IMG/VR virus record: IMGVR_UViG_3300049001_000044
Location: 62,001-126,000 of that record
DNA: 64,000 nucleotides
Reading direction: 5' to 3' (one strand)
Below are positions 321 to 62,709 of the stretch, in pieces. Within the stretch, counting starts at the first letter, position 1. Each line of letters opens with the position of its first letter. The position numbers and the translations under genes were made by a program. Under the pieces are notes generated by a model that saw only the letters and a list, made by a program, of their open reading frames with translations, was not told the DNA's origin and did not search any database.

Positions 321-335
321 ACTGAATTTTTCCAT

Positions 336-346
336 TTGTAAGAGCA
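336..346 (-). promoter_or_regulatory. boxA-like antitermination element ahead of tRNAs
   Basis: TGCTCTTACAA, one base short of rrn boxA TGCTCTTTAACA, just 5' of tRNA-His. Confidence 0.4.
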
Positions 347-360
347 CTAACGTTTCAACC

Positions 361-566
361 ATTCTTAGAAGACGGGGTATTGCAACCGTTCTCATTAGAA
401 CTCTAACAAATGGAAGCTGCGCGATTTCTCTAGCAGCATACTTCCATTGCCAAATTCATTTTGCCTTTGTCGCACTCGTCTATCTGAAGGCTACTCGATA
501 GGTTCATCGCGGTCCGGGTTTGTTAGCTCGGATACCCTGTCCGAGGATCGCTGTTTCCCAACAGCT
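361..566 (-). ncRNA. structured non-coding RNA/leader of tRNA operon
   Basis: Hairpins GCTGTT-GGGA-AACAGC, CTCGGA/TCCGAG, TGGAAG/CTTCCA and long-range CTAACAAA/TTTGTTAG pairing; no credible ORF. Confidence 0.45.
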
Positions 567-602
567 AAAAACAAAGAAGGGATAATCTTTCGATTATCCC
601 TT
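567..602 (-). terminator. intrinsic terminator (attenuator) upstream of tRNA cluster
   Basis: AAGGGATAATC-GAAA-GATTATCCCTT followed by CTTTGTTTTT on the minus strand. Confidence 0.9.
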
Positions 603-629
603 AGTGTTTGCTTGGATTTAGTCTTCGAC

Positions 630-761
630 TTAACAGTCTGGACGTTTATCCCCTACACTAAGGGTGGTGCTAATATTCTCGACGCGTTCAAAGCGCACGG
701 TATCGCGTTGGCAATCATGCTGCCAATTTTGATTCGTGTGTTTAAACATTGCGTTGATCAT
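630..761 (-). CDS. putative attenuator leader peptide, 43 aa (MINAMFKHTNQNWQHDCQRDTVRFERVENISTTLSVGDKRPDC)
   Basis: GGAG RBS 6 nt before ATG; overlaps antiterminator arm CCCTTAGTGT (655-664); not in the ORF track because it is shorter than 60 aa. Confidence 0.7.
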   Translation of the reverse strand: MINAMFKHTNQNWQHDCQRDTVRFERVENISTTLSVGDKRPDC

Positions 762-806
762 ATCAAGCTCCAGAATTTTCCAATGCAACAATTTGCATTG
801 TGAAGT

Positions 807-814
807 TATTTATA
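807..814 (-). promoter_or_regulatory. T4-type late promoter TATAAATA
   Basis: Exact T4 gp55 consensus about 45 nt upstream of the leader ATG; a second GTAAATA copy at 877-883. Confidence 0.75.
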
Positions 815-10029: not shown

Positions 10030-11259
10030 TTAGAGTTCTATCACGTCCTCAGCTGTGGGGCCGTAGGAGAGGTACTTGACGTTGACTTCAGGGATTCGGT
10101 CAGCGATCACCTTTGACAGTTCATCAGTGAGGATGGTGATGAGCTGCCCTCCCAAGTTCACGTTCAACTTTTCACCAACTTGATCCAGGCAAGTGATCAT
10201 CAGTTGGGGTTTGTTGACATGGATACCAGTGATTTTGCTCAAGCTGTAGGATCGCTGAATATCCCTACTGATCATCAGCGACAAGGTATCCACATCCAAT
10301 GGTGCGTAGCGGAAGTGTCCTTGCCAAGGGCCAGTTACGTTCGTCTTATCTGTGGGGATTTGTGTAGACGTGATAGGGAGATTCTCCATCTTCAGAGGGC
10401 CGGCGCCGTGACGCGTGAGGTAGCACCTAGTGATGTAGACTGGGGTGATCTCGTTGTAGAACGTCTCGTACGCAGTCAAGATGCTTGATGGCAGTCCCGT
10501 GACCGAGCGAGTGACGTGAGGGAAGATTCCCAGCTGTTCATCCAACATCAAACCTTGTGCGCCTTCAATGATGAGGTCAGTGTAGGGGCGGGTGTAGTCA
10601 GCGCGAATGCTCTTCAACGGGGAGAGCATCGTTGCGTCGTGTTCGAAGTCAGGATTTTCGAACATCTGCAGGAACGGCGCAGCCTCTTCCTCGTCGACCC
10701 TGTCCTTCAACAGCTCGTATTCTTTCTTCCAGTACTCATTGAAGATATGTTGCAAGGTGCGGGACATCTGGTAGATGGAGGTCTGCTTCACCATGCCAAG
10801 CGTGATGCTGCGGCCGGCGAGGCTGCGAGTGACCGTCTCGTTGATGCCTAACCCGCAAGAACCGTGGCGCCCTTTACCACGGGACAACTCGCGAAGAGAG
10901 TTCAATGCCATGTCGTAGATGATGGTGACGCGGCATTCGGGGTGAGCAATAATCTTGTCCTCAAGATCCACACCCATCAGATTGAGCTGGTCAATCTCTT
11001 TAGTGAGGGAGTAGGGATTGAGGATGAACTGCCGAGCGAGGTAGGTGTTGGCACCAGCAAAGGTACCTGCACCAATATGACCGAAGACATGGCGTTTACC
11101 ATCCTTCGTTTCGACGGTGTGTCCTGCTTGAGCACCACCGTTTTGGCGTGCTACGAGGGAAGGTTTTCCTGCCTTACGAACGAGATAGTCCGTAGTCAGT
11201 CCCTTACCCTCATCGCCGAAGTTTGCACCAATTACTGCAAAAGCGTGATTCATCGACAT
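10030..11259 (-). CDS. purA: adenylosuccinate synthetase-like protein
   Basis: GANFGDEGKG, GGAQAGHT, EGAQG, YLTRHGAGP motifs. Confidence 0.85.
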   Translation of the reverse strand: MSMNHAFAVIGANFGDEGKGLTTDYLVRKAGKPSLVARQNGGAQAGHTVETKDGKRHVFGHIGAGTFAGANTYLARQFILNPYSLTKEIDQLNLMGVDLEDKIIAHPECRVTIIYDMALNSLRELSRGKGRHGSCGLGINETVTRSLAGRSITLGMVKQTSIYQMSRTLQHIFNEYWKKEYELLKDRVDEEEAAPFLQMFENPDFEHDATMLSPLKSIRADYTRPYTDLIIEGAQGLMLDEQLGIFPHVTRSVTGLPSSILTAYETFYNEITPVYITRCYLTRHGAGPLKMENLPITSTQIPTDKTNVTGPWQGHFRYAPLDVDTLSLMISRDIQRSYSLSKITGIHVNKPQLMITCLDQVGEKLNVNLGGQLITILTDELSKVIADRIPEVNVKYLSYGPTAEDVIEL

Positions 11260-11292
11260 CGTGTTGCCACCTTTCATCGTTTGTTGCTTTTG

Positions 11293-14216: not shown

Positions 14217-15731
14217 TTAGGCTTCCGTGTTCTGACGCATTTCGTCCAGGGTGATCTCGTTGTAGAGGTCACCGTAGTGGTAGACGATCTGGTGCAGGTC
14301 TTCCAGGGTGTGGTGCAGGTCACCTTGGTCGATACGGACAGTCTTGATCTCGTTAGTCACGGTATCGCGAACCAGAGTCAGCACACCTTCCTTCGACTTC
14401 TTGCCAGCGTCAGTGACGGGGTCCTTCGCGATGCCGACCCATTCACCATCGACCAGGATCGAAGATGCTTTCTGGGCGAACTTGTACTTGTCGCGATTGA
14501 CTTTCTGCAGCAGTGCACCACCAGAACCGAAGATGATGCAGTCAGCCGAGTAGTTCAAGCCGATGACGATGTTGCCCAGCAGGGTACGGATTGCGGAGTG
14601 ATCCACACCATCGCCTTGGATGATGCCGACGTAGCGGATCTTCTTGTGGCCGGTGCTGGTGTAGTCGAAGCCATAAGCATCTTCCTGCATCTTAAGGATT
14701 TTAGGAACGATTTCCATCATGTCGCCGCTGTCCGGGCGGAAGACCACCTTGATGCCTGATGCCTTGATCAGTTCGACGAATGGAGGAGAGCAGAGTCGAG
14801 CTGCGCAGCGGAAGACATCGCGGCCATCGATGACGAGGGAGAGGATCTTGGCACCCAGCTTCTTCGCCGATGCGATCTGGTGCTCGAGGTAGTGGATTTC
14901 GCCGGCATCGTCCAGGCCGAAGGAACATTCCACACTGTGTTCAGTGGCGTAGACGGAGAAAGCAGCCATGTCGCACTTGTAGAAGTGGTTCGCAGCCAGC
15001 ACACCTTCGATGGTATCAGAACCCATGAAGTTGATGAGGTGAGCAAAGCCACCGATTTCAGCCTGCTCCGCGCAGGTAACACCGCGGCCGCCGAAGTCGT
15101 GGTAGGCGAAGCCGATCATCGACATGTCTGCACCCGACAACTTGTAGTAGTGCTTGATTTCCTGCTTAATGTCGTAGTCATCGGTCGCGATGGTGGTGGG
15201 GTACCAGATACCGCGGAGGATGATGGTCTCGAAGTAAGCGGACATCCAGAACAGGTCTTCGTCCAGGCAGGTGACCGTGTACAGAGCGTTGCCGCCCGGA
15301 ACCTTGGTGCCTTCCTTCGCTGCACGAATGATGAGAGGAGCGTAGCCGTTGTACTTCTCCACCACTTTCTCCCAGTCCTTGCGGGAAACCAGGGAGTAGC
15401 CGAAGTGCTTCAGCGAGAACGCTTCAGCTTCGTCGATGTGGAATTTGGTGATGCGCTGGGTAAAGTAGCGCTTCAGCAGCATCTGCATACCGGCAGGAAC
15501 GATGGTCTCGTCCTTGGATACGCGGGCTTCGCCGTAGCTGGACATGCCCTTGATGCCGGGACGGTACGAGAAGGCGTGTGCACCCTTGTACGAGTCCGAA
15601 CGGAGGATGAGGGAGATGATGAGCCGATCCAGGTAGGTGTACTTCTTGTCCGTGCTGGATGGAGTGAGGTACTTGGAAATGAAGTCGAACTTCTGTACCA
15701 AGCCGATTGCGCTGCTTGCAACTTGAGTCAT
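14217..15731 (-). CDS. nadV: nicotinamide phosphoribosyltransferase (NAMPT)
   Basis: DSYK, HDFGGRG, ATEHS, RPDSGD, IQGDG, FGSGGALLQ, KDPVTD..KKSK. Confidence 0.93.
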   Translation of the reverse strand: MTQVASSAIGLVQKFDFISKYLTPSSTDKKYTYLDRLIISLILRSDSYKGAHAFSYRPGIKGMSSYGEARVSKDETIVPAGMQMLLKRYFTQRITKFHIDEAEAFSLKHFGYSLVSRKDWEKVVEKYNGYAPLIIRAAKEGTKVPGGNALYTVTCLDEDLFWMSAYFETIILRGIWYPTTIATDDYDIKQEIKHYYKLSGADMSMIGFAYHDFGGRGVTCAEQAEIGGFAHLINFMGSDTIEGVLAANHFYKCDMAAFSVYATEHSVECSFGLDDAGEIHYLEHQIASAKKLGAKILSLVIDGRDVFRCAARLCSPPFVELIKASGIKVVFRPDSGDMMEIVPKILKMQEDAYGFDYTSTGHKKIRYVGIIQGDGVDHSAIRTLLGNIVIGLNYSADCIIFGSGGALLQKVNRDKYKFAQKASSILVDGEWVGIAKDPVTDAGKKSKEGVLTLVRDTVTNEIKTVRIDQGDLHHTLEDLHQIVYHYGDLYNEITLDEMRQNTEA

Positions 15732-28975: not shown

Positions 28976-30079
28976 TTAAGTCAGAGTACCTGCTTCGTAT
29001 TTTACAGGTTCACCTTTATTACGTACCTTCAGCGAGTGGATGGCGGCGATCGAGATGATTACCAGGCTGCCACCTGCGGTTACTACTTCGCCGAGTTCGA
29101 TGCCAGCGGCAGAGAGGAACATGACGGCTACGAGGAAGCCAATCGCATAGAATGCGCCGTGTTCGAGGTAAGCCAGTTCATCCAACGCTTCCTTATCGAC
29201 CATGTACAAGGTGAGGGACCGTACGAACATTGCGCCGATACCCAGGCCCAGTGCGATGATGAGGAAGTTGTTCGTGATGGCGAAAGCTGCGATCACACCG
29301 TCGAAGGAGAAGGAAGCATCCACTACTTCCAGGTAGATGAAGGCACCCAGGCCGGTTTTCGCTGCTGCATTGTCATCGCCGAGGAAGGCGCCGATACCAT
29401 CAACCAAGATGTAGGCGACCAGGCCAACCAGGCCAGCAGTGAAGAAGTGAGTGGGCTCATGCATGAAGGGAGAGACGATCAGCAGGGTGACGATGGCAAC
29501 AGCTGCTTGAATCGATTCGATCTTGCCAATGGTGACGAAGTGTTTCTCGATGAAGCCGATCCAGTGATGGTCCTTCTCAGCATCGATGAAGAACTTCAGG
29601 AAGACCATCAGAAGGAAGATGCCACCGAAGGCCATGATCTGCGTGTGAGCACTGGTGATTGCCGCTTGGTACGCTTGAGGATCGAACAACGCCATGTAGA
29701 CGGAGGTACCCTTGAACAGCTCGACCCATGCAGCTCCATTGAAGACCGCGCCGATGTGATCCCAGTTAATCACTGAGTGGGCGCCCGTTGCGATGGAGAC
29801 GATTGCAATGGGGAAGACCAGTCGCATACCGAAGACTGCAATCGCCATACCCCAGGTGAGGAAGCGATGTCGCCATTTGTCGTCCATGTCCTTGAGGACG
29901 GTGGCATTGACGATTGCGTTATCGAAGGAGACGCAGGTTTCCAGAACACCCAGCATGAAAGCTGCGAACATGTACTGCATTGCGGTGGTGATGCCGCCGT
30001 ACATGAAGCCGATACCGCCTGAGAGAGCGATCGCAGCCAGTGCGAAGGCAATGGAGCCACCAAAATATTTCTTGATCAT
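28976..30079 (-). CDS. DUF475/TerC-related integral membrane protein
   Basis: LE..SFDNA..NA, YLEV.DASFSFDGVI, YLEHGA. Confidence 0.88.
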   Translation of the reverse strand: MIKKYFGGSIAFALAAIALSGGIGFMYGGITTAMQYMFAAFMLGVLETCVSFDNAIVNATVLKDMDDKWRHRFLTWGMAIAVFGMRLVFPIAIVSIATGAHSVINWDHIGAVFNGAAWVELFKGTSVYMALFDPQAYQAAITSAHTQIMAFGGIFLLMVFLKFFIDAEKDHHWIGFIEKHFVTIGKIESIQAAVAIVTLLIVSPFMHEPTHFFTAGLVGLVAYILVDGIGAFLGDDNAAAKTGLGAFIYLEVVDASFSFDGVIAAFAITNNFLIIALGLGIGAMFVRSLTLYMVDKEALDELAYLEHGAFYAIGFLVAVMFLSAAGIELGEVVTAGGSLVIISIAAIHSLKVRNKGEPVKYEAGTLT

Positions 30080-40096: not shown

Positions 40097-41491
40097 TTAT
40101 ACAGCGATCATGTTGCGGCCCTTGAACTCCAGGACTGCGTCATCAGCCATTTCCACGACCTTGTCGAAGCGGATACCGCCACTTGCATCCTTGCGGTTGA
40201 GGGTGGGGAAGCGGAGGGATGCGTGCTTCTTCGCCTTCGTCTTCGACACTTCCTGGAACTTGATCACGGCCGTGGCACCCAGGTATTTCTTGGGGTTAGC
40301 CAGCATGTCTGCCCGCATGTCATCGTTCAGACCCGAGCCGACACAGGTTTCGAAGTAGATGCCATCGTCAGTCCAGCCCGCCACCACGATGCCGCCGACG
40401 GTATTCGCGAGGCGGGATTTGGGGCGACCGTAGTAGAAGCCAATGATGCGAGCGTCCGCCGGGTAGAAGCGCTTGACCTTGATCCAGGTGAAGGTGCGAT
40501 CCCACTCATAAGTGCTGTTCAGGTTCTTCAGGATCAGGCCCTCGATCTTCCTCGCCTTGTTCTCCGGCATGTCGATGGCTTCGTCGCAGTACTCCAGCAT
40601 GTCCGCCTCGTCTTGAACGATGCGTCCTTCCGTGAGGATGATCTTCTTCAGGCCCAGGGCTGGCAGGAGTTCAGCCAGGTACGCACGATTCTGTTCCATC
40701 GTGATGCCGCATTTCTGTGCCATCCAGTCCGTGAGCGGCATGAGGAAGAATGCGCGGAGCCGGAGGGATGCCTTGGCCTCGGTGTTGCCCGCTTTCTTCG
40801 CGTTCACTGTGGCCTCAAAGCCCAGGTCAGAGATGCGTTCGCAGTCCAACACGTAGTCGAATCCCAAGTGGTTGCGAATCTTGTAGAGCTCTTCGTCGAA
40901 GAGGCCGAGGATGTGGGAGGATTGTTTGCCCGACCGGGAGAAGGGGAGGATTTCGTCCTTCTTGACCATGATGATCGTGCGCTCGCCGTCGTACTTGAAG
41001 TCGGCTTGGCAGGGGAAGGTGATGTAGTCCCCGAATTCCATGTCCTCACCCATCTTCTCGGCCAGCATGACCTCGAAGGAAGGGATCACCCCGTACTTGT
41101 CCTTCAGCACCTTGTTCACAGTGTCGGCGGAGAAGCCCGCTTTCAGGTCCTTGTCCAGGATTCGTGCGAGGTAGCGTTGGGTTTCGTGGTCGAAGTAGGA
41201 GAGGGAGTCTGACACCGCCTCTCGTGCGTCATTGCCCGTGAGCTCCTTTGCATCCAGCTTGTCGAGGAGCTGGAAGAACCGGTCGTAATCCTTCTGGGAT
41301 GCGGGGACCTTCGCATCGTCTCCCGGCATATCGAATTTGCGAACGCCGAAAACGCGGAAGGGATTCTGAGCTTCCCAGATCAGCCGCCAGGTATTCTTGT
41401 CGGCTTGTTGCAGGGCAGCCACAATGGCTTTCTTAGTCCCAGCACCGCCAGCAGATTCCGCGGCTTTGATGACTTGTACGAAGTTACTCAT
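40097..41491 (-). CDS. ATP-dependent DNA ligase (T4 gp30-like)
   Basis: KYDGER, EGLILK, WIKVK, VGSG, SLRFP. Confidence 0.92.
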   Translation of the reverse strand: MSNFVQVIKAAESAGGAGTKKAIVAALQQADKNTWRLIWEAQNPFRVFGVRKFDMPGDDAKVPASQKDYDRFFQLLDKLDAKELTGNDAREAVSDSLSYFDHETQRYLARILDKDLKAGFSADTVNKVLKDKYGVIPSFEVMLAEKMGEDMEFGDYITFPCQADFKYDGERTIIMVKKDEILPFSRSGKQSSHILGLFDEELYKIRNHLGFDYVLDCERISDLGFEATVNAKKAGNTEAKASLRLRAFFLMPLTDWMAQKCGITMEQNRAYLAELLPALGLKKIILTEGRIVQDEADMLEYCDEAIDMPENKARKIEGLILKNLNSTYEWDRTFTWIKVKRFYPADARIIGFYYGRPKSRLANTVGGIVVAGWTDDGIYFETCVGSGLNDDMRADMLANPKKYLGATAVIKFQEVSKTKAKKHASLRFPTLNRKDASGGIRFDKVVEMADDAVLEFKGRNMIAV

Positions 41492-42269: not shown

Positions 42270-42860
42270 CTAGGCTCCCTTTACTTGATCGATTGCCCAC
42301 TTTCGTTCTGTGCAGTGGAAGCAAACTCCGCATGGTGGAATGCTATCATGCTTGGGACATGAACGAGTTAAATCGAGCAAATCATTTACACCAAGCAATG
42401 AGTACAGATAGATCGTCGCGCGCTTATCGAATGTCACGAACGGTGTTGCGTACCCTCTGTACTTGTTATCCATTGCAGTCAATGGACGCATTGGCTTAGG
42501 TCCAGTGTAATCCCAGTTGATTGGATTTTGAGTCACGCCAGTGTAGAGCCAATCGACTTGCTCCATGGTTTCGTAGATGTCTCTACGAAGCAATCCATTC
42601 TCAAGAACGAACTCATGCACCCTAGATCGCAAATCCACGTTGAATTTGTTTTCAAGATAGATGAGTGTGTTATCAATCGAGGCATTCTTCAAGTCTTTTC
42701 GGTACACGACAAAAATTTTGTCAGGCACGACCCCATTTACAAGTAGGCAGTACAGAAGAATTACACTGTCTGCCCCGCCCGAATACGAGATGCCGGTCAT
42801 CCCATCATGCAGCGGGATGATCACGTTTCGATAGGGGGTCTTGTAAATGATTTCCTTCAT
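42270..42860 (-). CDS. QueC-like PP-loop ATPase
   Basis: SYSGGADS; TRSC..CGVCFHCTERKWA. Confidence 0.75.
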   Translation of the reverse strand: MKEIIYKTPYRNVIIPLHDGMTGISYSGGADSVILLYCLLVNGVVPDKIFVVYRKDLKNASIDNTLIYLENKFNVDLRSRVHEFVLENGLLRRDIYETMEQVDWLYTGVTQNPINWDYTGPKPMRPLTAMDNKYRGYATPFVTFDKRATIYLYSLLGVNDLLDLTRSCPKHDSIPPCGVCFHCTERKWAIDQVKGA

Positions 42861-44434
42861 TACGACTTGATACCTTTACCTTGGACTGATTCTTGATCAA
42901 CCTCTTCTAGGAAGGTGAACGAGCTTGATGCGCTCAACTCATCTAGCATTGGTTTGATATCAGACGATACAGCATCTGGTGTCACCAAGAAGAAATAAAT
43001 CTTGGGTGAGACGAATGTAATGCCTGGACAGTGTAGAGTCACGGTGAACCACATCTGCTTAACATTCTCGCCTGGGGCTAGTTGTGTCCCTGGAGTGATT
43101 CGGATACCAACCACGCCGTCATCAGACACTACCGAGTTTTGCAAGATAGTAGCCATCTCAGCATCACCAAATTGCAGCGAGAAGACCAGGTCTTCTTTTT
43201 CAATCTGGGATAGCACGTTAACTGGCATCAGCATTTTCACGTCGACCTTCATATCAGCAGTGCCGCCGAGGGTGTTCGTACCCAGATACTGGATGTTGTT
43301 ATCTGGAAGCGAGTTAGTGTCTGGGCGATGCAGAAGACGATTTTCTGTTTGACTCACCTTATCATTCAAAATCAGCGCATTGTAGGTCGAATCGGCGATC
43401 ATGACGTCCTTCACCTCTTGCGCCATTGGGGCGATCTTGTTGATGCCGAACAGTGCCGATGCAACGCCACTTGCCAACGCGGCCGAGAAAGAAGAACCGG
43501 TGTTAAGCGTGTACTCATCTACCGCATTGAAGCCCGCAACGTCAACGTCTTTAGCTGGCGCATACAGATCAATTTTCTTGTTCACACCATAAACCTCAGC
43601 GAATTCATGATCGTCACTAGTGCTACCTGCAACGGTGAAAACACCCGCCAGACCAGCAGGAGTAACCTCGTCGATGTTTGTGAGAGTGTTACCAGCAGCC
43701 GCAACAACCATCATGCCTGCATCGATGAGTTTGGTAATTTTCGCGTTGATGTACTCGCTCGCTGGGATACGCCACGACATATTCACGACCATTGGCACAT
43801 CGAGTTTCGTCTGACGGTATTCGTAGACTTGGTCGATCAAATCACCCAGTTCACTGATGGATGGTTTGCGAGTAGCATCGCTGACCTTTACGATCTTGAG
43901 TGTTGCGTTCTTGTTGACACCGAGCGTTTTACCAGCTACGAGAGATGCAATTGCAGTGCCGTGACCCAACGTATCTTCGGTGTCAGTGAAATCGGGGAGG
44001 GTGAAGAGGTCTTCGATTTGCACGCCCTCGAACTCGACGTGGTCCTTTCTGATTCCGCTATCCATCACAATAACTTCTACCGATCGCTGCGCTTCAACAG
44101 TCGCAAGATATGGGTTGGCGACAAATGGGGCGTAGCGATTTGCGATTCGATTCTGCGCCCACCCCAGCATTTTGATTGGTGCTTCAGCAGGTTCTAGGAT
44201 TTCGCCTGCTTGAATACGACTGACGGGATCGGCAACTATTTCAGTGGTCCAGCCATCGTCGGTCTTTACATGAAACAGAATAGGCTCGCCAACAGCCACG
44301 CAGGACACAAGTCCTTCGGCTTTCAGAGCCATGTTAATCAAGCCGATCGGAATGTTTGACAGATCGGTCTCGTCAGTCTTGAGCAAGAACAGGTTAGCTT
44401 GCTCAGTAGTTGCGAAGGTTAGTTGAAGTTTCAT
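42860..44434 (-). CDS. S8 subtilisin-like serine protease
   Basis: DSGI, HGT, AAAGN, GSSFSA catalytic triad motifs. Confidence 0.9.
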   Translation of the reverse strand: MKLQLTFATTEQANLFLLKTDETDLSNIPIGLINMALKAEGLVSCVAVGEPILFHVKTDDGWTTEIVADPVSRIQAGEILEPAEAPIKMLGWAQNRIANRYAPFVANPYLATVEAQRSVEVIVMDSGIRKDHVEFEGVQIEDLFTLPDFTDTEDTLGHGTAIASLVAGKTLGVNKNATLKIVKVSDATRKPSISELGDLIDQVYEYRQTKLDVPMVVNMSWRIPASEYINAKITKLIDAGMMVVAAAGNTLTNIDEVTPAGLAGVFTVAGSTSDDHEFAEVYGVNKKIDLYAPAKDVDVAGFNAVDEYTLNTGSSFSAALASGVASALFGINKIAPMAQEVKDVMIADSTYNALILNDKVSQTENRLLHRPDTNSLPDNNIQYLGTNTLGGTADMKVDVKMLMPVNVLSQIEKEDLVFSLQFGDAEMATILQNSVVSDDGVVGIRITPGTQLAPGENVKQMWFTVTLHCPGITFVSPKIYFFLVTPDAVSSDIKPMLDELSASSSFTFLEEVDQESVQGKGIKS

Positions 44435-61801: not shown

Positions 61802-62709
61802 TGGTTACCCAGTTCGATGAACATTGCAGCCAGATTGATTTCGGTATCGGCCATGAGAGGATGGCGCGACAGGTATTCGGCGATGGTGACGATTGCTTGG
61901 TCTTTGTCCTTCACCTTCATCTTGTCGATGTTTTGGTACAGGAACTTGAACACGTCTTCATGCTCTTCACGAGTGGCAGACTCGCAGACCAACTTCCTGG
62001 CTTTCTTGAAGTCACCCTTCTGAATGCATTCCAGCAGACCAAACTTCCAGTCAGCGGCATCAGCACTCACATCCTTCGCACTTTGCAGTTTCTTGTTCTG
62101 CACATTTTGGGACAGGAGCTGGATAGTCTTGCGAATGTCAGGGTAGCCAACAGCCACGTAATCGCACAGGATCAGAGGATCATATTCCACCTTTTCCGTG
62201 TCCAGCATTTCTGCCATTCGCAGCGCAACCTTCTCTTGGTCAGGGGCTTTGAACGACACCTCTTGGAATCGGCTACGCAGCGGAGGGATGACCTTGTTGA
62301 CGTAGTTGCAGGTGGCGATGTAGCGGCAGTTCTCCGAGCTGTCTTCGATCAGCGAACGAAGCAGAGCTTGTGCATCGAGCGAGAGGTAGTCGAACTCTTC
62401 CAACTGAATCACTTTGAACTTACCCAGTGGGAAGGTCATTGCGAAGCCAACCGCCTTGTCACGAAGGGCTTCGATCTTTTCGTCCGAACATTTCAGCCTT
62501 AACACATCAGACGGATCAATTTGCAGATCGTTGATGAGGGCTTTGGAGATGGTGGTCTTTCCGGTGCCTTGCACGCCGAACAACAGGAGATTGGGAAGAT
62601 CACCGCTTGCTACGATGTTCTTGAAGAAGTTCTCTTGCTTATCGTCCTGAAAGATTACTTCAGCGATAGTCTTCGGGCGATAGCGTTCAACCCACAGCGA
62701 TGTTTTCAT
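61798..62709 (-). CDS. clamp-loader AAA+ subunit (T4 gp44 / RFC-like)
   Basis: LWVERYRP, G.QGTGKTT, LEEFD, AQ.LLR, LRSR. Confidence 0.92.
   Translation of the reverse strand: MKTSLWVERYRPKTIAEVIFQDDKQENFFKNIVASGDLPNLLLFGVQGTGKTTISKALINDLQIDPSDVLRLKCSDEKIEALRDKAVGFAMTFPLGKFKVIQLEEFDYLSLDAQALLRSLIEDSSENCRYIATCNYVNKVIPPLRSRFQEVSFKAPDQEKVALRMAEMLDTEKVEYDPLILCDYVAVGYPDIRKTIQLLSQNVQNKKLQSAKDVSADAADWKFGLLECIQKGDFKKARKLVCESATREEHEDVFKFLYQNIDKMKVKDKDQAIVTIAEYLSRHPLMADTEINLAAMFIELGNQ

Follow-up and report, generated by a model that had tools for sequence, protein, structure and literature searches.

How might a giant phage control the supply of the tRNAs it encodes? Why phages carry tRNA genes, and how they are used, is a long-running question. 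Current answers are codon compensation, replacement of degraded host tRNAs, and escape from anticodon nucleases (PMC10264068, PMC12409363), but how expression of these tRNAs is controlled is largely unknown. The stretch of DNA analysed here (the window) comprises 64,000 nucleotides, positions 62,001 to 126,000 of IMG/VR record IMGVR_UViG_3300049001_000044. It belongs to a 343-kb T4-type jumbo phage from soil with about 52 tRNA genes in two arrays. In front of one array lie a short open reading frame (ORF) and an intrinsic terminator. A sequence-only reading had interpreted them as a leader-peptide attenuator of the trp/his type that samples nearly all tRNAs, such that loss of almost any tRNA would switch on transcription of the phage tRNAs. 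We asked whether the elements of such a switch are present, whether they are conserved, and which tRNAs the leader samples.

Architecture of the leader module

Every sequence feature listed in the sequence-only reading is present where it had been placed. All positions refer to the minus strand of the window. The motif TATAAATA (814-807) is followed by a Shine-Dalgarno (SD) sequence GGAG (771-768), 6 nt before the ATG at 761, and by a 43-codon ORF (761-633) with a TAA stop codon (632-630) that encodes the expected peptide. The terminator consists of an 11-bp stem closed by a GAAA loop, AAGGGATAATC-GAAA-GATTATCCCTT (602-577), and the U-tract CTTTGTTTTT (576-567). A segment at codons 33-36, CCCTTAGTGT (664-655), is perfectly complementary to ACACTAAGGG (607-598), which shares 5 nt (602-598) with the 5' arm of the terminator. 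Array 1 then begins with tRNA-His (320-248), Glu (237-163), Lys (155-81) and Asn (73-1, cut by the window edge), and runs on to genome position 58039.

The alternative pairing is unlikely to have arisen by chance. A perfect complement of 10 nt or more between the ORF and a segment overlapping the 5' arm arose in 0.08% of 20,000 shuffles of the ORF (p = 8e-4). Of 20 SD-ORF-terminator combinations found in the 343-kb genome, only this one has a perfect complement of 7 nt or more. The 241-nt transcript folds far better than shuffled sequences (z = -5.4). The use of 19 of the 20 amino acids, which the sequence-only reading had emphasised, is not unusual for a random 43-codon ORF (p = 0.09), whereas the use of both codons of six two-codon amino acids is (p = 0.004).

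The promoter block (840-807) has the form CAGGTTGCTG-N16-TATAAATA. The exact 8-mer TATAAATA occurs only 7 times in the genome, which by itself might suggest that it is not a phage motif. This reading is ruled out by the core ATAAATA, which occurs 47 times on the coding strand and 15 times on the other, mostly 20-55 nt before an SD and start codon, and is therefore a recurrent promoter motif of this phage. The sequence-only reading had called the site a late promoter. A T4-type portal protein (Portal_T4) is encoded, but the second module described below has TATATATA or AATATATA instead, and both modules keep a TTGC block at -35. A gp55-type factor was not searched for, and the observations leave the choice between a T4-late-like and a sigma-70-like promoter undecided. 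A hairpin, CAATGCAA-ATTG-TTGCATTG (800-781), lies close to the 5' end of the transcript.

The surroundings are more complex than first described. The tRNAs do not follow the terminator directly: 247 nt separate the U-tract from tRNA-His. Within this spacer, a structured element just before tRNA-His (415-330) has a conserved core of ~45 nt enclosed by a long stem whose sequence differs between lineages. Upstream of the module lies an odd tRNA-like gene (1027-901) with a ~69-nt insertion in the anticodon arm; it scores 36.3 bits against the Rfam tRNA model and is called Thr(tgt) by ARAGORN in intron mode. Further upstream, two promoter-like sites form a tandem pair of direct repeats 75 bp apart, site A (AGTTTTTGTTG ... 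AAGCTATAAT, 1166-1129) and site B (1091-1054).

Conservation in related lineages

We recovered relatives from metagenomes and run assemblies, representing three further uncultured lineages: L006 (identical to L016-L019 in this region), L020 and L021. In all of them the module lies directly ahead of tRNA-His at the head of an array, and in L006 and L020 protein genes lie upstream. No close relatives were found among GenBank phages by megablast, blastn or tblastn, and scans of IMG/VR with a neighbouring protein and three DNA patterns found nothing. The neighbouring 267-aa gene has only domain-level homologues (a ParB-like C-terminus) in unrelated contexts. A 19-mer from the leader hit nine bacterial MAG contigs, but only over 19-29 nt, and we treat these matches as chance. 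A brief look at the tRNA region of phage XacN1 showed small ORFs preceding tRNA groups, but no composition match and no counterpart of the module.

The ORF, the terminator and the competing pairing are all maintained. Identity to the window for L020 and L006, respectively, is 94% and 95% over the SD and codons 1-31, 100% and 92% over the terminator, 44% in both over codons 32-43, 41% and 45% over the spacer, and 38% and 58% upstream; tRNA-His is only 70% identical in L020. The promoter block is conserved in all relatives, the SD is invariant in the four lineages, and the 5'-proximal hairpin varies only in its loop and by one A-U to G-U change. The ORF is open in all relatives (43, 42 and 41 codons) with an in-frame 3-nt indel at codon 10, and its stop codon always lies 16-22 nt after the 5' strand of the alternative pairing. 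Other parts are less constant. The tRNA-like gene is present in the window and L021 but absent in L006 and L020, AAGCTATAAT also lies upstream of the module in L020, and a 173-nt stretch (568-396) is present only in the window and L021, being replaced by ~30 nt in L006, L020 and the contig of sequencing run X23.

Loss of the 10-bp pairing in relatives had been named in advance as an observation that would count against an attenuator. The outcome is in favour: the pairing is kept as 10, 9, 8(+3) and 7 bp, and U661>C is compensated by A601>G, a change also seen in runs X12, X23 and X2. Covariation is nevertheless thin, with four lineages and one clean compensatory pair. The constrained terminator and antiterminator folds differ by only -3.6 to +2.2 kcal/mol in all five modules examined, and for L021 and L006 the antiterminator form is the minimum-energy fold. 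Contigs from RNA libraries of three environments cover the leader of relatives, although these could be DNA carry-over, and one crosses the terminator.

A large, almost invariant predicted hairpin domain (772-665) encloses the SD, AUG and codons 1-32, with 94-99% nucleotide identity where the flanks are 33-58%. Consensus-fold covariation inside this domain is uninformative because its columns are invariant. The domain is predicted to sequester the SD and AUG, and leader 1 has almost no synonymous change in 31 codons. Codon sampling alone does not explain this, so an extra RNA-level role must exist.

These properties could suggest a structured non-coding RNA or pre-tRNA leader (a stable small RNA, or a processing or stability element) in which the ORF is incidental and the hairpin merely ends or protects the RNA. 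A 5' hairpin is typical of stabilised RNAs, the antisense frame is also open, and the tRNA cluster of T4 carries two stable RNAs of unknown function. We consider this reading unlikely. SD and ATG are invariant and ideally spaced, the frame is kept through a 3-nt indel and a diverged tail, the second leader has ordinary synonymous variation, and the match of amino acids and codons to the arrays (see below) only makes sense if the ORFs are read. There is no Rfam family: neither module gave a match at E <= 1, and weak hits to BjrC68 on terminator 2 (24 bits against a threshold of 39 bits) and to HSR-omega on module 1 are chance. We also rejected the antisense ORF (447-803, plus strand, 118 aa), which is open only because the same conserved nucleotides are read; it has no conserved start, its substitutions are also non-synonymous, and module 2 has no counterpart.

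A second module at the head of the other array

A paralogous module lies outside the window, at genome position 214642-214412. It has a homologous promoter block (CAGGTTG-N9-TCGG-N4-CCTATAWATA), a 5' hairpin, AGGAG 5 nt before an ATG, a 31-codon ORF, the 5' strand of an alternative pairing (6-9 bp) at the last codons and stop, and a GAAA-capped terminator, followed by tRNA-Val and array 2. Leader 2 (31 aa) gave no hit in a library of 1.84 billion representatives, but its relatives L024 and L025 were found through the upstream 185-aa gene. The module is conserved in both, with synonymous and non-synonymous changes. Strong terminators in the arrays occur only at the two heads and at the array ends.

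Because modules 1 and 2 are paralogues, their RNA switches are not independent evidence. They do bear on whether a genuine terminator/antiterminator switch answers to some other signal, such as nascent-peptide arrest, an RNA-binding protein, a small ligand, or general transcription-translation coupling. The alternative structures are supported independently of what drives them, the invariant domain of leader 1 could be a binding site, and the conserved N-terminal peptide could act as an arrest peptide, as TnaC or SecM do. However, leaders 1 and 2 share the switch core and promoter but have unrelated peptides and ORF-internal RNA, which argues against a common ligand, protein site or arrest peptide, and the one property that tracks the downstream genes is codon content. 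A different signal is therefore possible but improbable.

A separate promoter downstream of the terminator had also been named beforehand as evidence against attenuation. Downstream of terminator 2 there are candidate promoters, a conserved TGnTATAAT and a TTTTCG-N17-TATAAT before tRNA-Val, which could feed array 2 independently; a weak promoter before tRNA-His cannot be excluded either.

Leader composition matches the downstream array

Of the first 31 residues of leader 1, 29 belong to the amino-acid set of array 1, and all 14 amino acids of this set are represented. Of the 31 codons, 29 are readable by array-1 anticodons (p = 1.6e-4), and 17 of 19 anticodons are sampled (p = 1.6e-3); those for AGA (Arg-tct) and AAG (Lys-ctt) are not sampled in the window's leader. 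Of the 31 residues of leader 2, 30 are from the array-2 set. Array-exclusive residues are distributed 19:2 against 1:25 (Fisher p = 5.6e-10). The Thr codons are ACG and ACC in leader 1, where array 1 has Thr-cgt and Thr-ggt, and ACA in leader 2, where array 2 has Thr-tgt.

The residues that do not match cluster where a stalled ribosome could no longer free the antiterminator: at codon 31 or later in leader 1, with the exception of Ala4, and at codons 28-29 in leader 2. In the inferred sensing window of leader 1 (codons 2-29, 758-675), whose limits are inferred from the size of the ribosome footprint, 27 of 28 codons specify amino acids whose tRNAs are in the downstream array. All substitutions among lineages inside the region where a stall would free the antiterminator stay within the set. 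The sensing part of leader 1 avoids Gly, Leu, Pro and Tyr and nearly avoids Ala and Ser, whose tRNAs sit in the other array behind its own Ala/Ser/Leu/Pro/Gly/Tyr-rich leader. The presence of 19 of the 20 amino acids in leader 1 comes from its unconstrained C-terminal tail.

This match also bears on the possibility that the modules are autonomous mini-genes, each a small protein gene with its own promoter and an ordinary terminator, while the tRNAs are made from other promoters or by constitutive leak and the competing pairing has no regulatory role. Gene callers predict the 41-43-aa products in four assemblies, the N-terminal 31 residues of peptide 1 are well conserved, the candidate promoters after terminator 2 exist, and many small ORFs lie among phage tRNA genes, for example in XacN1. 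Yet the C-terminal third of peptide 1 is free to change in sequence and length, and peptide 2 changes at 6-7 of 28 codons between close relatives while staying within one amino-acid set. The mini-gene reading gives no reason for the composition match, for the maintained, nearly isoenergetic alternative pairing, or for a terminator placed at the head of an array. No homologues were found outside this lineage. We regard this explanation as unlikely.

Discussion

Our preferred explanation, to which we assign a probability of roughly 0.7, is a ribosome-mediated transcription attenuator that gates a phage tRNA array and uses the array's own products as its signal. Transcription would start at the conserved promoter block, and probably also at promoters further upstream, and run through the leader ORF into the terminator. 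If the ribosome follows the polymerase closely, it would cover codons 33-36 or sit between them and the terminator arm, so that the terminator forms and little transcription enters the array. If the ribosome lags anywhere in codons 2-29 because an aminoacyl-tRNA is scarce, CCCUUAGUGU (664-655) would pair with ACACUAAGGG (607-598), removing the G-C-rich base of the terminator stem, and the polymerase would read on into tRNA-His and the rest of the array. In this view the circuit is a negative feedback on tRNA supply, too little giving read-through and enough giving termination, and the paralogous module does the same for the second array.

Sequence and comparison establish the parts, their conservation, the competing structures, and the match between leader and array. 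That ribosome position decides the fold, the direction of the response, and the physiological trigger (host tRNA loss through shut-off or tRNA-cleaving defence, or high late demand) are inferred. No experiment has been done, so the response of read-through to leader translation and charged-tRNA supply was not measured, and the host is unknown. Two features fit the classical scheme less well. The stop codon lies 22 nt after the 5' strand in the window (16-17 nt in L006 and L020), so a terminating ribosome does not cover that strand as in trp and would have to block pairing by sitting in the 47-nt loop. We also found no conserved anti-antiterminator (1:2) pairing that sequesters 664-655, so untranslated transcripts should read through; a local CCCU/AGGG hairpin is absent in L006 and L020, while the large domain over codons 1-32 could act as a pause hairpin, which leaves it undecided whether ribosome and polymerase are synchronised in this way. 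The interpretation offered by the sequence-only reading is thus partly supported: an attenuator is favoured, but each leader samples its own array and is not a pan-codon sensor, and the proposed link to anticodon nucleases is speculation.

If this reading is correct, phage tRNA arrays can regulate themselves, and the two arrays of one phage carry two differently programmed copies of the same switch. We consider this broader claim somewhat more likely than not. It would be the first attenuator whose regulated products are the tRNAs being sensed, and a built-in sensor that lets a virus replace tRNAs lost to host shut-off or to tRNA-cleaving defence systems. A leader whose codons mirror the tRNA set behind it would show that tRNA supply is under closed-loop control, and would make that directly testable, as the two modules predict opposite responses to the same tRNA limitation. 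It would extend attenuation from one amino acid, a run of codons and enzyme genes to many codons, tRNA genes and a virus. The matched pair of leaders would also be a compact, reprogrammable sensor of translational capacity for synthetic biology. We found no prior description of such a switch.

Comparison with other regulatory systems

The tRNA gene clusters of T4 and T5 provide the nearest genomic setting, as the phage is of the T4 type, has clustered tRNA genes, and carries a recurrent ATAAATA motif before genes that is present in module 1. To our knowledge no leader-peptide attenuator has been described for those clusters, and full-text literature searches found none. Module 2 has TATATATA in place of TATAAATA, and both modules have a conserved TTGC 16-17 nt upstream, unlike T4 late promoters.

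T-box riboswitches, like the switch proposed here, make a terminator/antiterminator decision set by tRNA status, but they bind one uncharged tRNA directly through a specifier codon and the T-box sequence, without translation. No such elements are present here, Rfam gives no hit, and the module contains a conserved ORF that is inferred to be translated.

The leader-peptide attenuators of enterobacterial amino-acid biosynthetic operons (trpL, hisL, leuL, thrL, ilvL, pheL) share with the present modules a promoter-proximal short ORF with an SD, an intrinsic terminator before the structural genes, an antiterminator that shares a strand with the terminator and starts inside the ORF, leader codons that correspond to the end product of the operon, and, as inferred for the present modules, negative feedback through ribosome speed. 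Here the regulated genes are tRNAs and not enzymes, the signal is spread over about 14 different amino acids with no run of one codon, and the system lies in a virus. No 1:2 anti-antiterminator was found, the stop codon of module 1 lies well beyond the antiterminator strand, and there is no sequence or Rfam similarity. The pheST (pheM leader) attenuator of E. coli, like the attenuator proposed here, controls a component of the translation apparatus, an aminoacyl-tRNA synthetase, in response to the supply of charged tRNA, but it uses a single amino acid (Phe codons), regulates a protein gene, and is cellular. In the pyrBI and pyrE attenuators, as proposed here, the distance between ribosome and polymerase decides whether a terminator forms. 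There, however, a closely following ribosome prevents termination and the signal is UTP-dependent polymerase pausing, whereas in the present modules a closely following ribosome should favour termination.

Genomic context and sequence features

The window covers positions 62001-126000 of a 343,229-bp virus record with direct terminal repeats and 50% G+C, derived from a soil metagenome. The genome encodes a T4-type portal and is therefore that of a T4-type jumbo phage. ARAGORN finds 52 tRNA genes (55 in its intron mode), all of which are on the minus strand. Nearly all lie in two arrays: array 1 at genome 58.0-62.3 kb, with one further tRNA at 52.4 kb, and array 2 at 206-214 kb, with three more tRNAs at 195-198 kb. 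Two adjacent tRNA genes at genome 195112-195264, outside the window, have the anticodon CTA (amber suppressors, labelled Pyl by ARAGORN); a similar pair is present in XacN1, another tRNA-rich T4-type jumbo phage, and they could point to stop-codon reassignment or read-through in part of the genome. Pfam identifies auxiliary genes for adenylosuccinate synthetase, nicotinamide/nicotinate phosphoribosyltransferase, a TerC/DUF475 membrane protein, an ATP-dependent DNA ligase and a subtilase S8 at window positions 10030-11277, 14217-15731, 28976-30079, 40097-41491 and 42860-44434, respectively, all on the minus strand.

The element of interest lies at the head of array 1. All of the features that the sequence-only reading had listed are present at the stated coordinates: the promoter motif TATAAATA at 814-807; GGAG at 771-768, an ATG at 761 and a 43-codon ORF ending in TAA at 632-630; an 11-bp stem with a GAAA loop at 602-577, with a U-tract to 567; and a perfect 10-nt complement, 664-655 against 607-598, which shares five bases with the 5' arm of the terminator. 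Shuffling the ORF gives such a complement in only 0.08% of trials, and of 20 SD-ORF-terminator combinations found in a genome-wide scan, only this one has a perfect complement of 7 nt or more. The transcript is far more structured than shuffled sequences (z = -5.4). The use of 19 of the 20 amino acids, which the sequence-only reading had noted, is not unusual for a random ORF (p = 0.09), but the use of both codons of six two-codon amino acids is (p = 0.004). The 19-mer TTGGCAGCATGATTGCCAA of the leader's inner hairpin (707-725) occurs exactly in nine unrelated bacterial MAG or genome contigs, where about four would be expected by chance, and the matches do not extend beyond 19-29 nt. The observation itself is confirmed.

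Upstream of the module are two tandem copies, 75 bp apart, of a promoter-like unit (AGTTTTTGTTG-N14-AAGCTATAAT; about 1166-1129 and 1091-1054, minus strand). Similar TATAAT-TTCATTGT units occur before other tRNA genes, for example at genome 195.3 kb, and TATAAT is strand-biased genome-wide (38 vs 8). Between these sites and the module lies a tRNA-like gene (1027-901, minus strand; also L021, a relative described below, at 1979-2109) with normal acceptor, D and T arms, but with a ~69-nt insertion forming a long hairpin in place of the anticodon arm. It scores 36 bits with the Rfam tRNA model and is called Thr-tgt by the intron mode of ARAGORN, but the insertion is far too short for a group I intron; three more such genes are proposed by the same mode at genome 36159, 58408 and 267524. 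The gene at 1027-901 is absent in the relatives L006 and L020. An exact 15-nt direct repeat, TAAATAACTTCACAA, is found at 868-882 and 798-812 (minus strand); a second copy of the promoter -10/+1 region lies 70 bp upstream, followed by its own hairpin (ACGACGATG...CATCTTCGT); it is also recognisable in the relative L006.

Downstream of the module, 247 nt separate the U-tract from tRNA-His. This stretch holds a 173-nt segment (396-568, minus strand) that exists only in the window and L021 and contains several small hairpins (for example, GCTGTTGGGAAACAGC and CTCGGACAGGGTATCCGAG); other lineages have ~30 unrelated bases instead. Just before tRNA-His (330-415, minus strand; L006 2603-2672; L020 1417-1489), a conserved ~45-nt core (TGAGAACGGTTGCAATACCCCGTCTTCTAAGAATGGTTGAAAC) is enclosed by a 13-21-bp stem whose sequence differs completely between lineages while the pairing is kept. 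This element has no Rfam match and may be a processing or structural element of the pre-tRNA. In the arrays, strong terminators occur only at the two array heads and at the array ends.

Promoter motifs

The exact 8-mer TATAAATA is rare in the genome. However, ATAAATA occurs 47 times on the coding (minus) strand (for example, at genome 52533 and 198477, outside the window, and at window 3898 and 5818) against 15 times on the other, mostly 20-55 nt before an SD and start codon, and twice about 13 nt before the 5' end of a tRNA gene. ATAAATA is probably the T4-late-like promoter motif of this phage. TGTTACAATTT and CTCTGGGCC are also enriched in intergenic DNA. We leave the class of the module's promoter open: the ATAAATA pattern fits a T4-late-like motif in a T4-type phage, but against that reading the second module described below has TATATATA or AATATATA, and all seven sequences keep TTGC 16-17 nt upstream, which is the sigma-70 spacing.

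Conservation of the module in related lineages

Searches of GenBank phages and IMG/VR returned no relatives, and a brief inspection of XacN1 showed no counterpart. Comparison of public sequencing runs with positions 230-1180 revealed related contigs in three RNA libraries (rhizosphere, soil and wastewater), which may represent DNA carry-over, and in one DNA run. In one contig, the stretches 239-395 and 569-816 are joined by 30 unrelated bases, which marks 569-816 as a discrete conserved unit. A metagenome scan and a search with the 43-aa peptide then gave sequences for three further lineages, L006 (identical in this region to L016-L019), L020 and L021. In all of them the module lies directly ahead of tRNA-His at the head of a tRNA array; in L006 and L020 protein genes lie upstream, so that the module is the very first element of the array. 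Gaps inside the tRNA arrays of the relatives (L016 4117-4758, 5469-6311 and 7111-7521; L017, L018, L019 and L020) carry DUF559/MTES_1575 genes (endonuclease-like) and a Phage_endo_I gene, suggesting mobile nuclease genes that reshuffle the arrays.

The promoter block (CAGGTTGC-N-TATAAATA), the 5' hairpin, the SD, the ATG and codons 1-31 are 94-99% identical at the nucleotide level, and the terminator is 92-100% identical. Elsewhere, identity to the window is much lower: 33-58% upstream of the block, 44% in codons 32-43 (L020 and L006), 41-45% in the spacer and 70% in tRNA-His (L020). The conserved domain of leader 1 is predicted to sequester the SD and AUG, and is conserved far beyond what codon sampling needs, so it has an additional unknown role (a pause hairpin, a stability element or a binding site). 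The ORF stays open (43, 43, 42 and 41 codons) through an in-frame 3-nt indel and a diverged tail, and its stop is always 16-22 nt beyond the antiterminator strand.

Loss of the 10-bp pairing in relatives had been named in advance as an observation that would count against an attenuator. Instead, the pairing is maintained as 10, 9, 8 (plus 3 with a bulge) and 7 bp. U661 to C is matched by A601 to G, and the same two changes appear together in sequencing runs X12, X23 and X2, although the covariation rests on few lineages. As a coding change, U661>C would turn Leu into Pro, so the constraint there is on RNA pairing. Constrained folding, also proposed beforehand, gave energies of the two structures within -3.6 to +2.2 kcal/mol of each other in every module, and for L021 and L006 the antiterminator form is the minimum-energy fold. 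In that form only a 6-bp A/U-rich hairpin remains, separated from the U-tract.

A second module at the head of array 2

The head of array 2 (genome 214642-214412, outside the window; sequence L022) has the same build. It has CAGGTTGCGTCGATTCTCGGCAAACCTATATATA, and the two promoter blocks share CAGGTTG-N9-TCGG-N4-CCTATAWATA. This is followed by a short hairpin, AGGAG, an ATG and a 31-codon ORF, MASLLLSTSYYLPAVPAAGSVLSAPGVKSPS. A 5' strand made of the last codons and the stop (GAGUCCUAG) is complementary to CUAGGGACUC, and a GAAA-capped terminator (GGGACUCCGC/GCCGAGUCCC) with a U-tract follows. tRNA-Val lies about 200 nt further on. Transcription of the tRNAs from a separate promoter downstream of the terminator had been listed beforehand among the findings that would tell against attenuation; a conserved TGnTATAAT and a TTTTCG-N17-TATAAT lie between terminator 2 and tRNA-Val and may feed array 2 independently. 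The module is kept in relatives L024 and L025, which were found through the upstream 185-aa gene. In them the terminator is identical, the pairing survives as 6-7 bp in a shifted register, and the ORF has both synonymous and non-synonymous changes and a stop that moves by two codons but stays in the 5' strand. The switch core (CCCUAG/CUAGGG plus GGGA...UCCC) is the same in both modules, so they are paralogs with different leaders.

Match between the leaders and their arrays

Array 1 encodes tRNAs for His, Glu, Lys, Asn, Thr, Trp, Asp, Ile, Phe, Gln, Arg, Val, Cys and Met, and array 2 encodes tRNAs for Val, Gly, Ala, Leu, Met, Pro, Tyr, Ser, Arg, Thr and Trp. The first 31 residues of leader 1 contain all 14 array-1 amino acids, and 29 of the 31 belong to that set. 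At the codon level, 29 of 31 codons are readable by array-1 anticodons (p = 1.6e-4 against windows of the phage's own genes), and 17 of 19 distinct anticodons are sampled (p = 1.6e-3). In leader 2, 30 of the 31 residues come from the array-2 set, and all four Ser tRNAs, both Gly tRNAs and three of the four Leu tRNAs are sampled. Counting only residues exclusive to one array gives 19:2 for leader 1 against 1:25 for leader 2 (Fisher p = 5.6e-10). Thr is encoded by ACG and ACC in leader 1 (array 1 has Thr-cgt and Thr-ggt) and by ACA in leader 2 (array 2 has Thr-tgt).

The non-matching residues of leader 1 (S31, L34, S35, G37 and P41; the exception is A4), and K28, C29 and N28 of the three leader-2 versions, lie at or after the antiterminator strand, where a stalled ribosome would mask that strand rather than free it. 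All differences between lineages inside the sensing part stay within the set: in leader 1 these are Thr ACG>ACC, an added Val, N>K, Q>H and V>N, and in leader 2 they are Y>L, P>S/V, V>L, A>V, V>A, L>S and A>G. This is what a leader-peptide attenuator predicts if its signal is the supply of the tRNAs encoded behind it. It also explains the use of both codons of Asn, His, Gln, Glu, Asp and Cys, because array 1 is essentially the set of two-codon amino acids.

Proposed mechanism

We propose that the polymerase transcribes the leader while a ribosome translates it. With ample charged tRNAs, the ribosome would reach codons 30-43 as the polymerase makes 607-577, and would then cover 664-655 or sit in the 47-nt loop, allowing the terminator to form. 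The second possibility arises because in the window's module 1 the stop is 22 nt beyond the 5' strand; in module 2, a ribosome at the stop codon would cover the strand outright. A stall anywhere in codons 2-29 would leave 664-655 free to take 607-598 as soon as it emerges, so that the terminator loses its G-C base and transcription continues into the array. The result would be negative feedback on tRNA supply, set separately for the two arrays. Weak points of this reading are the position of the stop in the window's module 1 and the lack of a conserved 1:2 pairing, none of which was found, so untranslated RNA should read through.

Our analysis establishes the parts, their conservation, the competing folds and the codon match, whereas the role of ribosome position, the direction of the response and the physiological trigger are inferences, and the limits of the sensing window rest on the known size of the ribosome footprint. 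We put the probability of this reading at about 0.7. The interpretation offered by the sequence-only reading is partly supported: its core, a leader-peptide attenuator, is supported, but its scope has to be corrected, as each leader is matched to its own array and is not pan-codon.

Comparison with known systems

The module is not a T-box, as a search of Rfam gave no hit. Full-text literature searches found no leader-peptide attenuator on tRNA genes, cellular or viral, and we know of none. In the proposed mechanism, the module works like the leader-peptide attenuators of the trp, his, leu, thr, ilv and phe operons. Four of their defining features are present; for a fifth our observations point neither way, and a sixth was not measured here. 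The module differs from these attenuators in three ways: in what is regulated (tRNA genes), in the signal (many codons rather than a run of one) and in the host (a virus).
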